From Haliotis rubra (lineage: Eukaryota): 64,000 nt of DNA. The notes beneath the pieces are model-generated. The model worked only from the letters and a program-made list of their open reading frames with translations, had not been told where the DNA came from and ran no database searches. The stretch's first letter is position 1. Each line of letters opens with the position of its first letter. Positions 3,062 to 46,400 of the stretch are shown one piece after another. The stretch is taken from the NCBI RefSeq assembly GCF_003918875.1, contig NW_025767512.1, positions 1,364,001-1,428,000 of the forward strand, in the 5' to 3' direction. The position numbers were made by a program, and so were the translations under genes.

Positions 3062-4832
3062 TTTAGGATAATGCTTTTCTGATATATCCTTTACATGTTT
3101 CGGATAATTCATTTCTGATATATCCTTTATATCCGTAGGATAATACATTTCTGATATATCCTTTACATGTTTGGGATAATGCATTTTTGATATATCCCTT
3201 TTATCCGTAGGATACTGCGTTTCTGATATATCCTTTACATGTTTGGGATAATGCATTTCTGATATATCCCTTATATCCGTAGGATACTGCGTTTCTGATA
3301 TATCCTTTACATGTTTCGGATAATGCATTTCTGATATATCCTTTATATCCGTAAGATAATACTATTTCTGATATATCCTTTACATGTTTGGGATAGTGCA
3401 TTTCTGATATATCCTTTACATGTTTGGGATAGTGCATTTCTGATATATCCCTTATATCCATAGTATACTGCGTTTCTGATATATCCTTTACATGTTTGGG
3501 ATACTGCGTTTCTGATATATCCCTTTTATCCGTAGGATACTGCGTTTCTGATATATCCTTTACATGTTTGGGATAATGCATTTCTGATATATCCCTTATA
3601 TCCGTAGGATACTGCGTTTCTGATATATCCTTTACATGTTTGGGATAATGCATTTCTGATATATCCCTTACTCCGTATATACTGCGTTTCTGATATATCC
3701 TTTACATGTTTCATGATATATCCCTTATATCCGTTGGATACTGCGTTTCTGATATATCCTTTACATGTTTGGGATAGTGCATATATGCCCTTATTTTGAT
3801 ATATCCTTTATATCATTTCGTTGTAGGATACTGCGTTTCTGATATATCCTTTACATGTTTGGGATAATGCATTTCTGATATATCCCTTATATCCGTTGGA
3901 TACTGCGTTTCTGATATATCCTTTACATGTTTGGGATAGTGCATTTTGATATATCCCTTATATCCGTAGGATACTGCGTTTCTGATATATCCCTTTACAT
4001 GTTTGGATAGTGCATTTTGATATATCCCTTATATCCGTATGATACTGCATTTCTGATATATCCCTTATATCCGTTGGATACTGCGTTTCTGATATATCCT
4101 TTACATGTTTGGGATAATGCATTTTTGATATATCCCTTATATCCGTTGGATACTGCGTTTCTGATATATCCTTTACATGTTTGGGATAATGCATTTTTGA
4201 TATATCCCTTATATCCGTTGGATACTGCGTTTCTGATATATCCTTTACATGTTTGGGATAGTGCATTTCTGACAGATCCTTTAAATGTTGGGATAGTGCA
4301 TTTCTGATATATCCTTTATATGCTTGGGATAATTCTTTTCTGATATATCCTTTATATCCGTTGGATACTGCGTTTCTGATATATCCTTTACATGTTTGAG
4401 ATAGTGCATTTCTGACAGATCCTTTACATGTTCGGATAGTGCATTTCTGATATATCCTTTATATGCTTGGGATAATTCTTTTCTGATATATCCTTTATAT
4501 CCGTAGGATAATGCATTTCTGATATATCCTTTGCATGTTTGGGATAGTGAATTTCTTATATATCCTTTATATCCGTAGGATAATGCATTTCTGACATAAC
4601 CTTTATATCCGTTGGATAATGCATTTCTGATAGATCCTTTGCATGTTTGGGATAGTGCATTTCTTATATATCCTTTATATCCGTAGGATAATGCATTTCT
4701 GACATAACCTTTATATCCGTTGGATAATGCATTTCTGATAGATCCTTTGCATGTTTGGATATAGTGCATTTCTGATATATCCTCTATATGTTTGGGATGC
4801 TCTCTCTGATATATCCTCTATATGTTTGGGAT
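3062..4832. repeat. 36-bp minisatellite with 72-bp and 108-bp higher-order structure
   Basis: Alternating units ataatgcatttctgatatatcctttacatgtttggg and atactgcgtttctgatatatcccttatatccgtagg; ends in (CT)n(CA)n. Confidence 0.95.
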
Positions 4833-30441: not shown

Positions 30442-31290
30442 CCATTTCAAAAGTAAATTCTAAAATAAATGTGTAAGCTATAACGTAGTGCAAAACAATC
30501 AGGGGCAGAATTTGTCCTCATCGTTGACCAGTGTTTTTCAAACTAATACCTCTGGAAATATGATGAGCCTGTTTTATAAAACTGTTTATAAAACAACGCT
30601 TCAAATTGCTATATTTTGAAGAACCAGTATTCTACATTGATAGACAGGCATTTGTCTGTATCGTTATTGTAGAAACACATATTTTCCTGACGGGTTGGCA
30701 ATCCATATCTAAAAATAAAAATCAGTGTTGATATTAAACTACTGAGATTTCAGAGCTAAGTGTAAACTAACATGTAGTCTTTGAAACGTAAATATTTTAC
30801 AGAAACTAACAGATAAAAATATATCTGAATAAAGTATAGGGATAAAGCAGCCCCAAACCTCGATCGCTCCATTTTCAGAAAATAGGGTTATCTAGACTTG
30901 CCAGCTATTATAGATTTGATTGGGCTGTTTAGGACAAATTTGTTTCAAGGTCAGTGTGACAAATTGATTAATAAGCTTGGGAGCAAAGCTAACCTTTGGC
31001 CCAGCGCTTTTTGTTGATTGACAAGCGGAGGTCACTGCACATTAGTGTACTCTTTGTTTTGTCAGATCCAAAGGCTTGGGAACGTGTGGATATTTCATGC
31101 AGATAATGTATGTAAATCGATAAGATTTTTTAACGCATTTTAATAAATCATATCCAGTAAATAGCACTTGGTCCGGTTTTTGTAATTCTTGGAATTGTCC
31201 GGATGATAATCGACGGAAGTGATAAAGGGAGATAATACAACAAGTAGAGAATGGAGCACGCTGAACCTTTGTGAAACATTTTGTAAAGCA

Positions 31291-32711
31291 ATGGCAGCAA
31301 GTTACGCTGAAAATGAACTGAATTTGCTTCCAGCTATCTATGATGTAATACGAAGGTAATATCAAATGTCTGAAGATGACAATGTTGTTTCGTAAATGCC
31401 AACTAGACATTGTATCAATATAGGATCATTTGGGTTTCGCAAACAAACGTATCACTTGCGTTAGGACACCACAACAGACTATAATGTGTGAATGCAGAGA
31501 CCACATAATCTATTATATGGTCTCTGGTGAATGTTTACGTCATTAGTGCATTTGATAAAACCACGGACTTCTGTTATCTTATAATCTTTTCCCATAGGCG
31601 GTTCAAAAATTATATTTCTACTATAAGTGATTCATTAAAATGCCCATACTATTTTCTTTCGTTTATTTGTTTAAGCGCAACACGTGTAACTAGTAGTATT
31701 TTATATTAAACAAAAGTTAACGAACACGTAATGTTCAGTTGTGAGCTTCATCTGTGAGTTTGTTGGTATCGACGTATTAGTTATCAAATGTGCTACAGAC
31801 TGTAGTACAGTGCAACACAATATAATTTATGTATTTATCACATTGAATGGGTTGTCGAAGAAATGTTTGTTCATTAGCTGTAATGGTAACAATTTGCAAT
31901 GACCATTTATCAGATGTTCAAAAGGGAAAGAGTTCCTTCCGTTCCCCCAACCTAACTCTAAACCTAACCCTAACATAAATTTTGGACTTTTAGTCATGTT
32001 TGTGAGTTCTCTAGTAATTGTTGTAAAAGTTTTGTTAATAATTTTAGCATATATTAATTTATATCTATTATTTGGGAAGGGGGAACGGGAGGATCTCTTA
32101 CTTTAAAGAGTAAAATCTTGAAAATCTAAATCACAGAATGGCATATGATGCATCAAACTATTTTATAACAGCTGATTCAACTTAAATAACCTGAAAGAGC
32201 TTCATGATTATTTTCGGATAGGAAGTGCTTTGCATTTCACATTAACAGGAGTGAGTGAGTGAGTTTAGCTTTACGCCACTTTTAGCAATATTCCAGCAAT
32301 ATCACGGCGGGAAACACCAGAAATGGGTTTCACACATTGTACCAAAGTGGGGAATCGAACCCGGGCCTTCGGCATGACGAGTGAATGCTGCATTTTAACA
32401 CTTTATGATATTAGTATCAGCTTATCCAGTAATGGGGAGTAACACAAATCCCATAGGTATTGATGTTACACTAAAAATGTGTGTTTTCTCTTCTTCAGTA
32501 TTGAGAAGGACTCCCATGATGTGAATCAAAAGATGACTGATCTTAAAACCAGCTGCAGAAAGCTCGAGAAAGTGTTGATAAACTTTCTGGCATCCAAACA
32601 AGCAAAGACGAACAATTGAAAAAGATTGCTGTGCTCCGTAAGCAGCTGACGTTGAAGACTGAGTTACTGCAGAAATACAAGAAACTGAACAATTTTGAAT
32701 TAGGACATTGA
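31291..32711 (+). CDS. MED9: Mediator subunit 9; exons 31291-31355 and 32499-32711; apparent 1-nt deletion near 32545-32550
   Basis: MAASYAENELNLLPAIYDVIRS|IEKDSHDVNQKMTDLK then, after adding one base, QLQKARESVDKLSGIQTSKDEQLKKIAVLRKQLTLKTELLQKYKKLNNFELGH*. Matches recalled MED9 FLPLVHNIIKCMDKDS...PGI...KNELLQKYK. GT-AG phase-2 intron 31356-32498. Confidence 0.88.
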
Positions 32712-32837
32712 GGCTGTTCTTGTTATAGATTCATCATCCTGTTGGTTTTACTGGAACCATTGAATATCACTTAAGTACAAGTTCTGGTTCTTCATACACC
32801 TCATCGCTGAAGACTTATTTGTGCAACTCTCTGATTA

Positions 32838-33359
32838 ATGATGGAGGGTGATACCAGTGTTCACGCCATCTATAAAAAGGATCCTGAAGAGTGGATGCAG
32901 TTTGTGTATAAACAAGTCACAGTTCTGGATGAGGGTGGGGCAGAACATACAGGCTGGGTGTTTACTATAGACCCAGTTTCAGAAACCATTGTCCTGGCTC
33001 AGTTTGATCAAGATGGCAACGTTAGCGTTGACATCATTAAAGGCAGCACTGTGTCAAAGATTACTGTTATCAATAACAATACAGAACTGTATAGAGTTCA
33101 ACTTGATCAGCTGTTCAGGCCAGCTTCAGCCTTGGCTTTGACCCCTGACGAAATGAAGAGAAGACAGCTCTTGCTAAAATCATGGCTGGAAAAGAATCGG
33201 ATTCCAGTTACAGTTGATGGAGACATTTTGACAATTGCAGATGCTCTCTTTATTGAGCCACCATATGGGTTTGAAAACTGCCGCAGTACAAATGAAATTG
33301 TGCTGGGAAGAATTCAAGGCTTGATAAAAAATATGCCTGAAGATCATGACACATGGTGA
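32838..33359 (+). CDS. GEMIN6: Gem-associated protein 6 (SMN complex, Sm-like fold), 173 aa, intronless CDS
   Basis: KKDPEEW..FVYKQV.V...GWVFTIDPVSETIVL, LKSWLEKNRIPV and IEPPYGFENCRSTNEIVLGRIQGLI match recalled Gemin6 motifs. In-frame TGA at 32832 bounds the ORF. Confidence 0.93.
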   Translation: MMEGDTSVHAIYKKDPEEWMQFVYKQVTVLDEGGAEHTGWVFTIDPVSETIVLAQFDQDGNVSVDIIKGSTVSKITVINNNTELYRVQLDQLFRPASALALTPDEMKRRQLLLKSWLEKNRIPVTVDGDILTIADALFIEPPYGFENCRSTNEIVLGRIQGLIKNMPEDHDTW

Positions 33360-33729
33360 TAAATGTCGCATGTAGATTCCTACTTCATTTTCATACATCT
33401 GCAATTATTTTCGCCAAAGTTGTCATGAAATATATCAGCCTCTGGTCATATATATCAAAACATATTGTTGTCATATATTATAACGTTTTATTACGTCAAT
33501 TTTTTTCAAAAGAGAACATGCTGTTCATCTGAGCCAGTGTTGAAAAGAACAGGGCATCTGGGTTCTGGTTCCCCTAAATGTGTCAGCTTCATACTTGTGC
33601 TTGTAGGTTTCATAAAAGTGGTAACTAAATACCTGAGTGAGTGAGTGAGTTTCTATTTAACGTCACATCGGCAATATCTCACTCAGTCATATCGTGACGA
33701 AAATACCTGAGAGTACTTATTATCCATAA

Positions 33730-33966
33730 CCCGTGATGGTCCGGGATAGAATTGATCTTCAGTAACCCATGCTGGTCGTAAGAGGCGACTAACAGGATCG
33801 GGTGGTCAGGCTCGCTGACTTGGTTGACACGTCATCGGTTCCCAATTGCACAGATTGATGCTCATGCTGTTGATCACTGGATTGTCTGGTCCAGACTCCA
33901 TTATTTACTGACCGCCGCCCTATAGCTGGAATATTGCTGAGTGCAGCGTAAAACTCACTCACTCAC
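33730..33966 (+). mobile_element. Family B SINE downstream of GEMIN6
   Basis: Full copy with TSD acttattatccata. Confidence 0.9.
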
Positions 33967-34566
33967 TTATTATCCATACTTCACAGTCTTGATGACACTG
34001 CATTCCGTCTTTAAGTGTGAATATACAAGACTGCTGTGTCTATTGAAAGAGGCTTCATACAACTCTAGGAGATGATAAAGAGCCCAATCAAAACATACAG
34101 ATTGTGGGGATCATTAATTTGTTTAGCTGGAACACATGACCATGTAATTAATATTTTAAATCAACAATCTCGTAACCTTTAGCTTTATCTGCACGTTTTG
34201 TTGGTATAAAAATAAACTGCATACAACTCCTGAAGATGGAAAGAGCCATAACTCCATACACAGACATTGTAGGATCCCATCATTCCAGGATATTCTGGCA
34301 TTGATAAATCCAGATGGATGAAGCACTTTGGCACATGTCATGTGAGGATCAATACTGTTTGTTATGTAACAACTTGTGCTCCCCTGTTACTCTGTCACTG
34401 GGCCAGGCCCTTGTGTAATTCATTGGTGAAAAGCAGCAGCACTGCAAACCAACCAAATGCATTCTCAGCGAGATCAATGGTGATGGAGGAACACTGTGTA
34501 TACAAACCCTTGAAGTGTTGGTGATGGGTATTGCTGAACCCTCATTGTGGCAAAATGTGTATCTTA

Positions 34567-34868
34567 GGGACTGTTCATAATTTATGGCTTGGGGGATGAT
34601 GATGATTTTTAATGGAGAAGCATGTGCAATGTGAATGCCCCCTCCCAACATTTATGTACAAAGTAAGTGACCCCACCTGCATGTCATGTACAAAATCAAT
34701 GCCCCATAATTTGGGTAATATTTTTATGTACAAAATTGATGAACAACCCACCACCCTCTCCCTATTACATGTGTACAAAATTGATGACCCCCCTGCCTCC
34801 CCAGAACAAAATGTGCGACCCCCTTAAATGCATCATCACCCTCCTAGCCATAAATTATGTATGGTCCC
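34567..34868. mobile_element. PIF/Harbinger-like MITE, same family as 21093
   Basis: TIR GGGAC..TTCATAATTTATGGCT, TSD TTA, shared interior. Confidence 0.85.
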
Positions 34869-35878
34869 TTAGCGTGTTCTCTGTCTTTAGTCATAAATTC
34901 ATTAAGTTGTCTACTTGAATTGTAATTTAATTTAGTTTTAATTGATGAACTTTGCATCTGATGTATGCTTAACACCTGTATGTAAACCATGATATATGTA
35001 CAATCCTTATTATGACATTTTGCTCTACCAAAATCAATTTCAAAGAAATGAAATGTGCCCAATATTCCACTCTCCAGTTTTTCTACTTATCATGTTTCTA
35101 GGAAATTGGTCAGGCTCAGTCTCTTTTTTTCAGAGGGAAAGTGTAAACCTTTTTTTTAATTTTTTCTTCTAAATTTGTAGATTGTCCTGCTTGATGAAGA
35201 CTAGACTAACACTTAGTCTCTGAATAATTATACGTCTTTCGATAGATTCAGAACTTGAGGATATCTAGACTTGCTTCATTTAAAGTTTACCATTGCAGAA
35301 AGGGCTGGGCAGAGGGGAAAATAATGCAGTTCGGGGACTGTGACACGGGCAAAACCAAGAGTGAATGTTTACTGTTTACATTTTTATTCAGTTCCTGTTG
35401 TAGCACTGAGAACTGGTTTTGAAGATTAGCCGAGTAGTATTATACCCTTATTGAGCTGGGAGATTTTGAACTGTAACTTTGTATAAGTTCAGACACCTTT
35501 GTATCGTTTTCATTTTATGTCAAGATGTCAAATCATTATAATGAATGGTCATATTCATCAGTTTCAACATTGTTCAATGAGAAATAAATACTTTTACCGG
35601 TACTTCTTTGAATGTGTTTTGTAATGAGCAAGTTTTGAGAATTGCCCCTACTTTCCAGCACAATGTTTGTGTTGTCTTTTATTGTTTACTGATGCACACT
35701 GTATATTCAGGCTCTTTGATTCTGTCCTGTTAAAATAAGTCAAGACACAACCCAGTGGTTGATGTCATGAGCAACTGCCAATCTTTTGAGTAAGTCTGAC
35801 CAACCAGAGTCTGTGTTGCTCACTGCAATCTCATTAATTTCAGATGTTTTACTCAGATAAGTTATGAAACCTAAATTA

Positions 35879-43400: not shown

Positions 43401-46400
43401 AGGATACATTTTACTTGACTGCTACTGAATTGATGTAAATTCTGGTTAAATCTGGTTGCTACCCTTCAGGTAGCATGCCAACTGTCTGTCGCCTCCCTGT
43501 GAACAGCAACTATTTGTTTGTTGTTTAACACAGCACTCAGCAATATTCCAGCTATATGATGGTGGTCTGTTCATAATTGAGTCATCCGGGTTAGAATATT
43601 GATCTTCCGTAACCCATGCTTGTGGTAAGAGGCGACAAACGGGATCGGGTGGTCAGGCTCGCTGACTTGGCTGACACATGTCTTCGGTTCCCAATTGCGT
43701 AGATCGATGCTCATGCTGTTGATCACTGGATTGCCTGGTCCAGACTCAATGTGAGTGAGTGAGTGAGTGAGTGAGTGAGTGAGTGAGTGAGTGAGTGAGT
43801 GAGTGAGTGAGTGAGTGAGTGAGTGAGTGAGTGAGTCTTTATGCCGCTTTGGAGCAATATTCCAGCAATATCACAGATGATGTCAGACCAGCAATGGGAT
43901 TCACGCATTTTACCAATGTGGACACAAACCTGATGAACGAATGCTTTAACCACAAGTCTACCCCACTGCCTCTTGCAAATGGGAACACTTAACAGACATC
44001 AAGCAACACACTAATCAGATGGTAAAACCAAGCAGACAGACCCAGGTAAACTGATAGGTTTCTGGTGTAACAATAAAACTGATATGCCATCTTGCAGCAT
44101 AAAGCCCAATAATGTCCACAANNNNNNNNNNNNNNNNNNNNNNNNNNNNNNNNNNNNNNNNNNNNNNNNNNNNNNNNNNNNNNNNNNNNNNNNNNNNNNN
44201 NNNNNNNNNNNNNNNNNNNNNNNNNNNNNNNNNNNNNNNNNNNNNNNNNNNNNNNNNNNNNNNNNNNNNNNNNNNNNNNNNNNNNNNNNNNNNNNNTTTA
44301 GCAATATTCCAGCAATATTACATCAGGAAATACCAGAAATGGGCTTCACACATTGTACCCATGTGGTGATTCGAACCTGGGTCCTTGGTGTGAGGAGCAA
44401 GCGCATTAACCACTAGGCTACCCCACCTCCCTGTTCAAATTAAAGGTTCATAAATCAAATGATATAATCTATACACTACACTATGGACGCAATCCAATGA
44501 CTAGTGAAACATTCTGTGCATCTAATAACTTATATTACCATTGCTCTGTACTGGTGCAAATGTGAATGAAAACCTTCACAATAATGGTGTCCGACTTACT
44601 TGACAGCCTCCAGTCGCTTATCACTGCGGACCAACTCAATGAACTCCTGTCTGCGAACTTTGAACTCTAGGGTACTCTGAAACCAAAGCATAATTGATGA
44701 AGATGCTGCTTCCACATTGGTTGAAGTTTCCTATTTTCATGTGATAAATCTGGAGTATAGCCTTACTGATACTGGGATATATTAAGGATGTAAAAGTAAC
44801 CGACCCTGGCAAGCAAATAGGAAAGAATTGTTACTAGGTTCAAAACTGATATTTTTTATTAAAGTGTTTTTATTCAAGTTGAAGTTCAATATGATTTTAT
44901 TGGAACATGTATATAATATTTTGATTTTATTTTGAAGTCAATTTACAAGACATCTTAATACAAAGAGACATCATTCAAAAGTAAGACTAAGAGACTGAAT
45001 GTGTATAAGATCTGATCGATTTTGTACAGTCACTGCAATCTATGTCACCTTCTAACAAGAAACATGATAGAAAGGAAAAAGATATAACCTTCATCTTTCG
45101 TAGTTTGGACTTGTTGTCGTAGCACCAAGCTAGACAGGGCCCAGTCTCGTGTCTCATCAGCGATTCCTCCACTTCCTTTGAGGTGAGGAAGAGCTCTATG
45201 TTTGTCAAATCCTGCAAACAAATGCATCTTAACTTCATGAATATTGACACACGTTTTCAATATAGTGGGCTAATAAGACTGTTGTAACATATATGAATAA
45301 AAAGCTGTGCTAATGTCAACTAAACAAAATGGAATTATGTGTTAATTAATAATGTCACAATCCAGGAGTGATGGTACAAAATCTAAATTTTTGAATATTT
45401 TTTTTATTACGGAAGAAAGGAATTTAATCCAAAAATAAAATCCTTGCAAACTTTTGTTTGGTACATTTAGTTGATGCTAAAATAGTTGATACAGTAAAAA
45501 TAAGATCTAAAATAAGTAAAAACAGCTAAGAAACAAGTTCATTGGCAAGAAAACTAAAGGCATTGTCCCAGACAAATGGCAACAAAACAAAAAGCCTGAA
45601 TACCAAATTGCGAACATTAGCAAAGCAGCAAAAGATGGTGTACCTCTATTTCAGAATGCCGGGCCAACTTGAGAGCTGTGTTATAGTACCCGGCCCGTAG
45701 GAAGAACTCCACTAGCATGCGATCCAGACGCTTCTTCTGCCACAGCGGACGCGCCTCCTCGGGGAGATTCTCAGCCTCCTTCAGGTGCTCTACCCGGCGT
45801 TTGATGACCCGGGCAGCCTCTAGTTCATCCTGGATACTTTCATCGGCCTGCAATCATACATCATGTAGATAGGGTAGATGAGTAAGTGGTTGAGTTGGTG
45901 AGTGGGTTGATTGGTTTGTTGTTTAGCTCAGCACTCAGCAATATTCCAGCTGATAAGCTGTGGTCTGTAAATAATCAAATCTGGACCAGACAATCCAGTG
46001 ATCAACAGCATGAGCATCGATCTATGCAATACGATGACATGTGTCAACCAAGTCAGCGAGTCTGACCACCTGATCCCCTTAGTCGCCTTTAACGACAAGC
46101 ATGGGTTGCTGAAGACCAATTCTAACCCGGATCTTCACAGGTTTGTGTAAGTGGGTGTGCGTAGGGTGTATATAAGAAAACTGAATGAACACAATCCCAT
46201 AACAACTTCAAAACAAGAGGACAACATCAAGGACATGGAATCAGTTTCTTTTAGAAACACCAAAACATAAATGGCTGCATGGGTTTGATAAATATGCAAA
46301 ATATTCACTGTTTTTCAAGCTGTGCTTTGGAATTAAGTGACAAAATTGATGAACAGATGGAGGGATGGACGTAAGGAAGGAGGTAAGGATGGACGGCCAG

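Follow-up and report, generated by a model that had tools for sequence, protein, structure and literature searches.

Outside insects, animal mRNAs coding for two unrelated proteins with no recourse to trans-splicing are, to our knowledge, rare, and we know of few that are conserved across phyla. MOCS2, which encodes the large and small molybdopterin synthase subunits, and MOCS1A/B are deeply conserved animal bicistronic genes; their ORFs are close or overlapping on one mRNA, and the layout has been kept for hundreds of millions of years. Dicistronic genes without trans-splicing are described in Drosophila, where they are among the 'rule-benders' of FlyBase (PMC4528330). There, two unrelated conserved ORFs separated by a short spacer share one capped and spliced mRNA, the second of them often being small. 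In green algae, polycistronic nuclear mRNAs have short, AUG-poor inter-ORF spacers and fewer AUGs in the upstream ORF (PMC7896298); leaky scanning is reported as the route to the algal ORFs (PMC11291117). In the spliced-leader (SL) operons of nematodes, tunicates and chaetognaths, one promoter serves housekeeping genes that lie on the same strand at intervals of about 100 nt.

Features of all these systems appear to recur in the MED9-GEMIN6 pair of the abalone Haliotis rubra, which probably belongs to a kind of animal gene that is uncommon but already known. The partners encoded by MOCS genes act in one pathway and complex, whereas we know of no complex shared by MED9 (Mediator) and GEMIN6 (SMN complex), and nothing points to binding between the two proteins; MOCS2 ORFs overlap, whereas MED9 and GEMIN6 ORFs are 17-182 nt apart among the loci compared. 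The pair lies in a window of 64,000 nt (RefSeq assembly GCF_003918875.1, contig NW_025767512.1, positions 1,364,001 to 1,428,000). Coordinates given here are those of the window, and all features described are on its + strand. It is likely that MED9-GEMIN6 is an ancient spiralian dicistronic mRNA, from which GEMIN6 would be translated by scanning ribosomes, mainly through reinitiation. A literature search for MED9 with GEMIN6, dicistronic Gemin6 and bicistronic mollusc genes found no report of the pair. Being compact, single copy and retained in gastropods, bivalves and a nemertean, it is a natural system for studying how, in metazoans, a ribosome that has passed an ORF of 90 codons arrives at another long one, and for asking why such linkage persists.

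The coding part of MED9 exon 1 (31291-31355) comprises 21 codons and 2 nt. It is followed by a GT..AG intron (31356-32498, donor GT at 31356) and by the coding part of exon 2 (32499-32711), which ends in a TGA at 32709-32711. The C-terminal 54 aa pass the Pfam gathering score for Med9 (PF07544; 42.5 bits, cut-off 26.9, 6.9e-11), and the two exons are 84-95% identical to MED9 of H. cracherodii, with exon 1 at 95%. The intron is missing from RNA-like contigs X1, X3 and X6, which cover exon 1 and join it to exon 2, yet it is covered by the DNA run X15. It contains a SINE copy (~32250-32395) and telomere-like TAACCC repeats (~31945-31975). The GEMIN6 CDS (32838-33359) is an intact ORF of 173 aa and, as the preliminary description had it, is intronless. 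It carries both Gemin6 Pfam domains (PF06372, 60.6 bits, cut-off 23.9; Gemin6_C, PF20417, 77.1 bits, cut-off 33.4) and is 92% identical to the gem-associated protein 6-like of H. cracherodii. Each gene is single copy: searches across the genome found no second or intact MED9 and no further GEMIN6.

MED9 had been taken for an intact ORF in the preliminary description, which overlooked a frameshift. Its reading frame is interrupted in this assembly. Exon 2 follows one frame until ~32548 and another from 32547 to the TGA at 32709, and the ORF from the ATG at 31291 stops, as assembled, at 32617-32619 after 61 aa. Alignment places the shift at an A-run (32545-32548) with a 1-nt deficit: the window has A4, and the equivalent run is A5 in H. 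cracherodii and in one Logan contig. Over 32497-32713, contig X6 has 218 letters against 217 in the window. Because the genome holds no other MED9 copy, the frameshift most likely reflects a homopolymer error of the assembly, and it flags the presence of such errors.

Upstream of MED9, the ETS-like motif CGGAAGT that had been noted at about 31214 occupies 31214-31220 and is a candidate core promoter element. RNA contigs of relatives start at ~31246-31251, some 30 nt downstream of it. A 7-codon upstream ORF (31251-31274), also found in H. cracherodii, lies at the extreme 5' end of these contigs. A promoter just upstream of 31246 would produce a pre-mRNA from which the single intron (31356-32498) is removed; the predicted mature mRNA would run from a MED9 ORF of ~92 codons across a short spacer lacking AUG into the intronless GEMIN6 ORF, and end in a long 3' UTR.

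RNA-derived contigs from two related abalones, with the intron removed, run unbroken through the spacer and GEMIN6. A single 1069-nt contig (X6) aligns to 31246-31353, 32497-32713 and 32815-33403, and contigs X1 (1275 nt) and X3 (1273 nt) cover exon 1 and 32497-33626. The oyster clade provides four layouts of Logan cDNA contigs (L005-L008), in all of which Med9 immediately precedes GEMIN6 and the spacer measures 41 nt. All oyster-clade contigs with GEMIN6 (17 of 17) fall within these layouts and have MED9 sequence before it; L006 carries a spliced, full-length MED9 (91 aa) and GEMIN6 on one contig. Spliced RNA is thus continuous over both ORFs in X1, X3, X6, L006 and L008, as contigs rather than single molecules. 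These contigs and the recurring layout support the earlier proposal that the 3' exon of the MED9 transcript contains GEMIN6.

Contigs are assemblies, and one that spans two genes is not proof of a single molecule; single molecules spanning both ORFs are what we infer from them. Overlapping MED9 and GEMIN6 mRNAs could fuse into one contig during assembly and would then be indistinguishable from a dicistronic mRNA. It is unlikely, on balance, that the locus makes two overlapping but separate mRNAs, one a MED9 mRNA that carries GEMIN6 as 3' UTR, the other a shorter mRNA for GEMIN6 protein whose promoter would lie within the MED9 intron, exon 2 or the spacer. Such an arrangement would suit L005 and L007, which hold intron sequence directly upstream of exon 2 and could be DNA, pre-mRNA or intron-initiated transcripts. 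It would also suit the situation in Drosophila, where no more than 45 of 159 dicistronic loci appear to be exclusively so (PMC4528330). However, spacers as short as those of Lottia (17 nt), one further assembly (30 nt) and oyster (41 nt) are too small for a promoter, and a start in exon 2 or the intron still leaves MED9-frame and other ATGs before GEMIN6. Among the contigs seen, none starts in the spacer. Independent genes, moreover, need no strict same-strand adjacency across phyla. An additional GEMIN6-only transcript beside the dicistronic mRNA is possible.

The adjacency is not peculiar to this genome. A MED9 stop, a spacer and a GEMIN6 ATG follow one another in H. cracherodii (182 nt), Lottia (17 nt), Mytilus (180 nt), three further assemblies (73, 30 and 85 nt) and the nemertean Lineus (120 nt), as a check for conserved adjacency across molluscs and other lophotrochozoans had called for. 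Judged from these layouts, the arrangement is older than the split between molluscs and nemerteans. In Lottia, Mytilus, L012 and Lineus, VPS35L lies upstream of the pair in divergent orientation; ORF peptides from these four loci gave no match to VPS35L in the window at 1e-4. Babylonia may be an exception, with MED9 and GEMIN6 listed on contigs of different size. Gene tables for Lottia and Mytilus give GEMIN6 at the locus and lack MED9, so one gene of the pair is easily overlooked or scored absent in spiralian genomes.

GEMIN6 is intronless in nine of nine spiralian loci examined. In the hemichordate Ptychodera, the one outgroup compared, it has introns (3.9 kb for 180 aa) and no MED9 neighbour. 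This fits the retroposition suggested in the preliminary description: an intronless, retroposed copy of GEMIN6 probably landed in the MED9 3' UTR. After so long a time, a poly(A) remnant or target-site duplications would be expected to have eroded. With GEMIN6 free of introns, the MED9 stop remains in the last exon, and the mRNA would be spared exon-junction-dependent decay.

The intercistronic spacer in the window (32712-32837) was described as 126 nt long, free of ATG, AATAAA and ATTAAA and poor in CpG. All of this holds: there is a single CpG, and common poly(A) hexamers are absent. Neither AATAAA nor ATTAAA occurs in the spacer of any of the nine loci compared (17-182 nt), each of which has two conserved, non-overlapping ORFs on the same strand that no poly(A) signal separates. 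Eight independent spacers contain 2 ATGs where 13.8 are expected, and 0 of 5000 shuffles were that low; a control stretch 3' of GEMIN6 contains 12. No ATG-started upstream ORF overlaps the GEMIN6 start at any of the nine loci. MED9 exon 2 has 1.11 ATGs per 100 nt and GEMIN6 has 2.73 (P = 7e-5), a difference which may be an effect of the amino-acid composition of exon 2. The depletion of AUGs from the spacers would favour scanning and reinitiation; it would be expected, too, if the spacer, which resembles a 5' UTR, were the leader of a separate GEMIN6 mRNA.

If the mRNA is dicistronic, ribosomes would most likely finish the short MED9 ORF, scan the spacer and reinitiate at GEMIN6, with a minor share arriving by leaky scanning past the MED9 AUG. 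The MED9 AUG in the window has a strong context (G at -3, G at +4), and the spliced sequence ahead of GEMIN6 contains six more ATGs, in line with the start context and several internal ATGs said earlier to disfavour simple leaky scanning. Position -3 is a purine and position +4 a G at every MED9 AUG among the loci compared, and because all these contexts are strong, reinitiation is favoured over leaky scanning. After an ORF of 90 codons, ribosomes in well-studied systems usually reinitiate poorly, which counts against this explanation. The MED9 start contexts also set the pair apart from the algal mRNAs, for which leaky scanning is reported (PMC11291117).

The preliminary description had left reinitiation and alternative splicing as the two routes to GEMIN6. 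The spacer statistics favour the first, and an alternative acceptor has found no support. Under the second, which has a slight chance of being correct, MED9 exon 1 would be spliced to an acceptor within the spacer or close to it, and most of MED9 skipped, leaving a short upstream ORF that ends before the GEMIN6 AUG and allows efficient reinitiation. Oyster, H. cracherodii and Lineus do have plausible pyrimidine-rich AG sites shortly before the GEMIN6 ATG, and alternative splicing gives monocistronic isoforms at many Drosophila dicistronic loci (PMC4528330). Against this, the window has no AG in the last 30 nt before the GEMIN6 ATG, and an alternative acceptor cannot apply in Lottia because its 17-nt spacer is wholly without AG. 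Among the joints listed, all spliced contigs use the canonical exon 1-exon 2 junction, although contigs drop rare isoforms.

That the pair is an SL operon, an internal-ribosome-entry unit or a readthrough fusion is very improbable. The short same-strand intergenic distance is like that of nematode or tunicate operons. The pair is unlike them in that no spliced leader or monocistronic processing is seen and mature RNA contigs retain both ORFs; none of the GEMIN6 contigs bears a foreign leader, a weak test since contigs drop rare forms. No case of SL trans-splicing has been demonstrated in molluscs (PMC3795323), and an SL operon was rejected. A structured internal ribosome entry site was likewise rejected: the spacers, compared with one another, neither have a sequence in common nor fold consistently into a stable structure (z-scores +0.9, -3.5, -0.7, +1.1, -2.0 and 0.0; +0.90 in the window). 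A fusion protein is excluded, as the preliminary description had concluded, by stops in the GEMIN6 frame, namely the MED9 TGA at 32709 and spacer stops at 32772, 32808 and 32832, and by the relative frame of the two ORFs, which varies among species (0, 2, 2, 0, 2, 1, 0, 1 and 0 by locus).

MED9 has other close neighbours outside Spiralia. In Drosophila it shares a locus with CG42518 that counts among the dicistronic genes, and one P insertion is named for both (PMC4978919). In Aedes, an 82-aa NCBP2AS2/Mrx7-like ORF begins 2 nt after MED9; it is not Gemin6, and a Pfam search with it gave no match. Kinship of this ORF with Priapulus UQCC2 was considered and rejected, since comparison shows the two to be unrelated. 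The spiralian loci differ from that of Aedes, and probably from that of Drosophila, in having GEMIN6 as second cistron. We suggest only tentatively, and with some doubt, that in protostomes MED9 serves as a privileged first-cistron 'carrier', whose ~90-codon ORF permits resumed scanning and behind which lineages lodged differing small housekeeping genes: GEMIN6 in Spiralia, UQCC2 in Priapulus and the NCBP2AS2-like ORF in mosquitoes, possibly matching Drosophila CG42518. Spiralian GEMIN6 would then be made solely from the dicistronic mRNA by reinitiation, and the dosage of an SMN-complex subunit would have been tied to a Mediator subunit for more than 500 million years.

Downstream of GEMIN6, RNA-like contig coverage points to a long 3' UTR (33360-35531), which probably belongs to the same transcript. 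Contigs X1 and X3 reach 33626, and past an embedded SINE the region ~33980-35531 is covered at equal depth. The first AATAAA hexamers after MED9 are beyond GEMIN6 at 34211 and 35583, as reported previously; an ATTAAA exists at 33036, within the GEMIN6 CDS. The SINE in the probable 3' UTR (~33634-33971) is in the opposite orientation to the intronic copy.

MED9 and GEMIN6 lie on the same strand and are separated by an intercistronic spacer of 126 nt (32712-32837, + strand), as the preliminary description had placed them. GEMIN6 is an unbroken, intronless ORF of 173 codons (32838-33359, +). Both Pfam Gemin6 domains are matched well above cut-offs, and the product is 92% identical to the Haliotis cracherodii 'gem-associated protein 6-like'. 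MED9 has two exons, also on the + strand. Exon 1, coding from the ATG at 31291, ends at 31355 and is followed by a donor GT at 31356; exon 2 is preceded by a pyrimidine-rich acceptor, starts at 32499 and ends with the TGA at 32709-32711. The C-terminal 54 residues, up to this TGA, give a Pfam Med9 match (6.9e-11). The spacer had been described as lacking ATG and AATAAA/ATTAAA and as poor in CpG; it contains 0 ATG, 0 common poly(A) hexamers and 1 CpG, and the predicted in-frame stops are present. The CGGAAGT motif is located at 31214, AATAAA is found after MED9 only at 34211 and 35583, and the start context of MED9 is indeed strong. The MED9 ATG is preceded, at a distance of 17 nt, by a 7-codon upstream ORF (31251-31274) whose start context is strong. 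It is conserved in H. cracherodii (L002, ~4155-4178) and sits right where the RNA contigs begin. The only N run in the window (44122-44296) is outside the region studied.

Two ORFs had been claimed. GEMIN6 is intact, but MED9 is not one open frame as assembled. Within exon 2 the reading frame changes between the initial stretch and the portion coding for the Med9 domain, and the assembled ORF from ATG 31291 stops at 32617-32619 after 61 residues. A single A is missing from a homopolymer: the window has CTT-AAAA-CC, with the four A at 32545-32548, whereas H. cracherodii and a Logan contig have five (alignment A1). With five A, H. cracherodii MED9 is an intact protein of 92 aa. Over 32497-32713 the RNA contig of a second abalone relative (organism B) exceeds the window by one letter. 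The genome (1,378,282,171 bases in 2855 contigs) has one copy each of MED9 and GEMIN6, so the missing A most likely stems from a homopolymer error of assembly; a true lesion carried by the sequenced haplotype is possible but less likely. The A4 run in the genome's only MED9 hints at further homopolymer errors in the assembly.

Four sequencing runs from two close relatives of H. rubra were mapped on 31000-35800. In X15, a DNA run of organism A, the MED9 intron is covered; in X1 and X3 (organism A) and X6 (organism B) it is uncovered, repeats excepted. The X6 contig (1069 nt) matches 31246-31353, continues directly with 32497-32713 and then with 32815-33403. In this contig exon 1 is joined to exon 2 by splicing; next comes a spacer whose sequence has diverged too far for alignment, and then GEMIN6. 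The X1 (1275 nt) and X3 (1273 nt) contigs cover 32497-33626 in one piece, plus exon 1, the latter read from the same-depth difference at 31320. Because the intron is absent while sequence from MED9 to GEMIN6 is continuous, these contigs represent processed RNA running through MED9, spacer, GEMIN6 and 3' UTR; such contigs may fuse transcripts that overlap, and neither transcript ends nor rare isoforms are visible in them. Past a SINE, RNA-like coverage resumes at equal depth and reaches ~35531, ~50 nt short of the AATAAA at 35583, which suggests a 3' UTR of ~2.2 kb.

The proposed check for conserved adjacency was made on loci fetched through GEMIN6 and MED9 relatives, and the layout was found across molluscs and in the nemertean Lineus longissimus. 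Spacers measure 182 nt in H. cracherodii (L001/L002), 17 nt in Lottia gigantea (L004), 180 nt in Mytilus edulis (L009), 41 nt in oyster-clade Logan contigs (L005-L008), 73, 30 and 85 nt in three ENA assemblies (L011-L013) and 120 nt in Lineus (L017), where both genes are annotated. All 17 of the 17 oyster contigs bearing GEMIN6 reduce to the four layouts L005-L008. Two of these, L006 and L008, are spliced; the former encodes a complete MED9 of 91 aa, then GEMIN6. In a GEMIN6 tree, one of the three ENA assemblies falls together with the annelid Owenia. In Patella the two genes have adjacent locus tags; many short contigs of equal size common to the MED9 and GEMIN6 match lists are suggestive only. 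GEMIN6 is intronless in every one of the loci measured. In the hemichordate Ptychodera it spans 3.9 kb with introns, and MED9 is absent within 8 kb upstream. Since the layout is present in molluscs and Lineus and missing in Ptychodera, the linkage is older than the mollusc-nemertean split and is not general to bilaterians. The preliminary observation is largely confirmed, and its interpretation, that GEMIN6 sits in the MED9 transcript, is supported by intron-free RNA contigs of two relatives and by the recurrent layout.

A divergent VPS35L gene precedes MED9 in Lottia, Mytilus, L012 (one of the ENA assemblies) and Lineus; it was not found within the window. In Mytilus and Lineus an SNF2/ERCC6-like gene lies 3' of GEMIN6, making a microsynteny block wider than the pair. 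Babylonia areolata MED9 and GEMIN6 are listed on contigs of different length (102.9 and 74.6 Mb); either the linkage is broken in a neogastropod, or two different assemblies are involved. The gene tables of Lottia and M. edulis list only GEMIN6 at the locus, though MED9 is intact. Either the dicistronic layout causes one gene to be overlooked in annotation, or the tables keep only the longest product per gene.

The spacers share no common sequence and no consistent stable fold, and AATAAA/ATTAAA occurs in 0 of 9. Across eight independent spacers, 672 nt in total, there are 2 ATGs; 13.8 are expected from shuffles, and 0 of 5000 shuffles were as low. Equal lengths immediately 3' of GEMIN6 contain 12. 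At no locus does an ORF that opens at an ATG in MED9 exon 2 or in the spacer extend across the GEMIN6 start. ATG density per 100 nt is 1.11 in MED9 exon 2 and 2.73 in GEMIN6 (P = 7e-5), and Lineus exon 2 lacks ATG altogether; part of the difference in density may be due to amino-acid composition. MED9 start codons have a purine at -3 and G at +4 in 6 of 6 examined. As read from sequence, spacer and leader features fit ribosomes scanning the spacer. A separate GEMIN6 mRNA, with the spacer as its 5' UTR, is also possible: the same properties would suit a 5' UTR, but spacers of 17-41 nt are too short for an intergenic promoter. The favoured route is reinitiation, by which GEMIN6 would mainly be reached after the short MED9 ORF; leaky scanning might supply a minor share. 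Taken together, these features make an IRES, a fusion protein and an SL operon unlikely readings. Drawing on an idea in PMC3951408, the lack of an intron in GEMIN6 would always leave the MED9 stop in the last exon, so that MED9 translation should escape exon-junction-dependent decay, a possible reason for GEMIN6 having stayed intronless.

Other candidate partners of MED9 occur in other protostomes. In Priapulus caudatus (L014, 8001-8800) MED9 has no intron; 134 nt after it comes a same-strand UQCC2/CBP6-family ORF, a candidate for a different dicistronic partner, and then TFIIE-alpha. In Aedes aegypti (L015, 48233-48486) an 82-aa ORF begins 2 nt after the MED9 stop. It matches no Pfam family, resembles NCBP2AS2/Mrx7-type small proteins (atlas search score 0.91, a language-model lead only) and probably corresponds to Drosophila CG42518. 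Drosophila MED9 and CG42518 are treated by FlyBase as a dicistronic pair. A single P-element insertion named for both genes (PMC4978919) agrees with this treatment. Given these candidates in Priapulus, Aedes and Drosophila, MED9 may repeatedly serve as a first cistron, with partners that differ between lineages. Non-trans-spliced dicistronic genes of Drosophila number 159 loci, 45 of them apparently exclusively dicistronic (PMC4528330), and the MED9-GEMIN6 unit is predicted from sequence and contigs to work like them. It also resembles the deeply conserved MOCS2, here with a new gene pair and a distribution across phyla within Spiralia. Full-text literature searches found no report of the linkage. 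For MED9-GEMIN6 the translation route is putative, as is the exclusivity of the dicistronic transcript.

Several repeats occupy the non-coding parts of the unit. The MED9 intron has a short run of telomere-like TAACCC-type repeats (31945-31975). A very abundant SINE, with contig depth up to tens of thousands, is present in two copies of opposite orientation, at 32250-32395 (MED9 intron) and 33634-33971 (presumed 3' UTR). Their core arms (32267-32310 and 33912-33955) are 77% complementary; the pair flanks MED9 exon 2 and GEMIN6 and could pair in the pre-mRNA. The presumed 3' UTR also contains a MITE-like inverted repeat pair of 47 nt (34563-34609 and 34826-34872), 81% complementary and 216 nt apart, and this region has high multi-copy depth.
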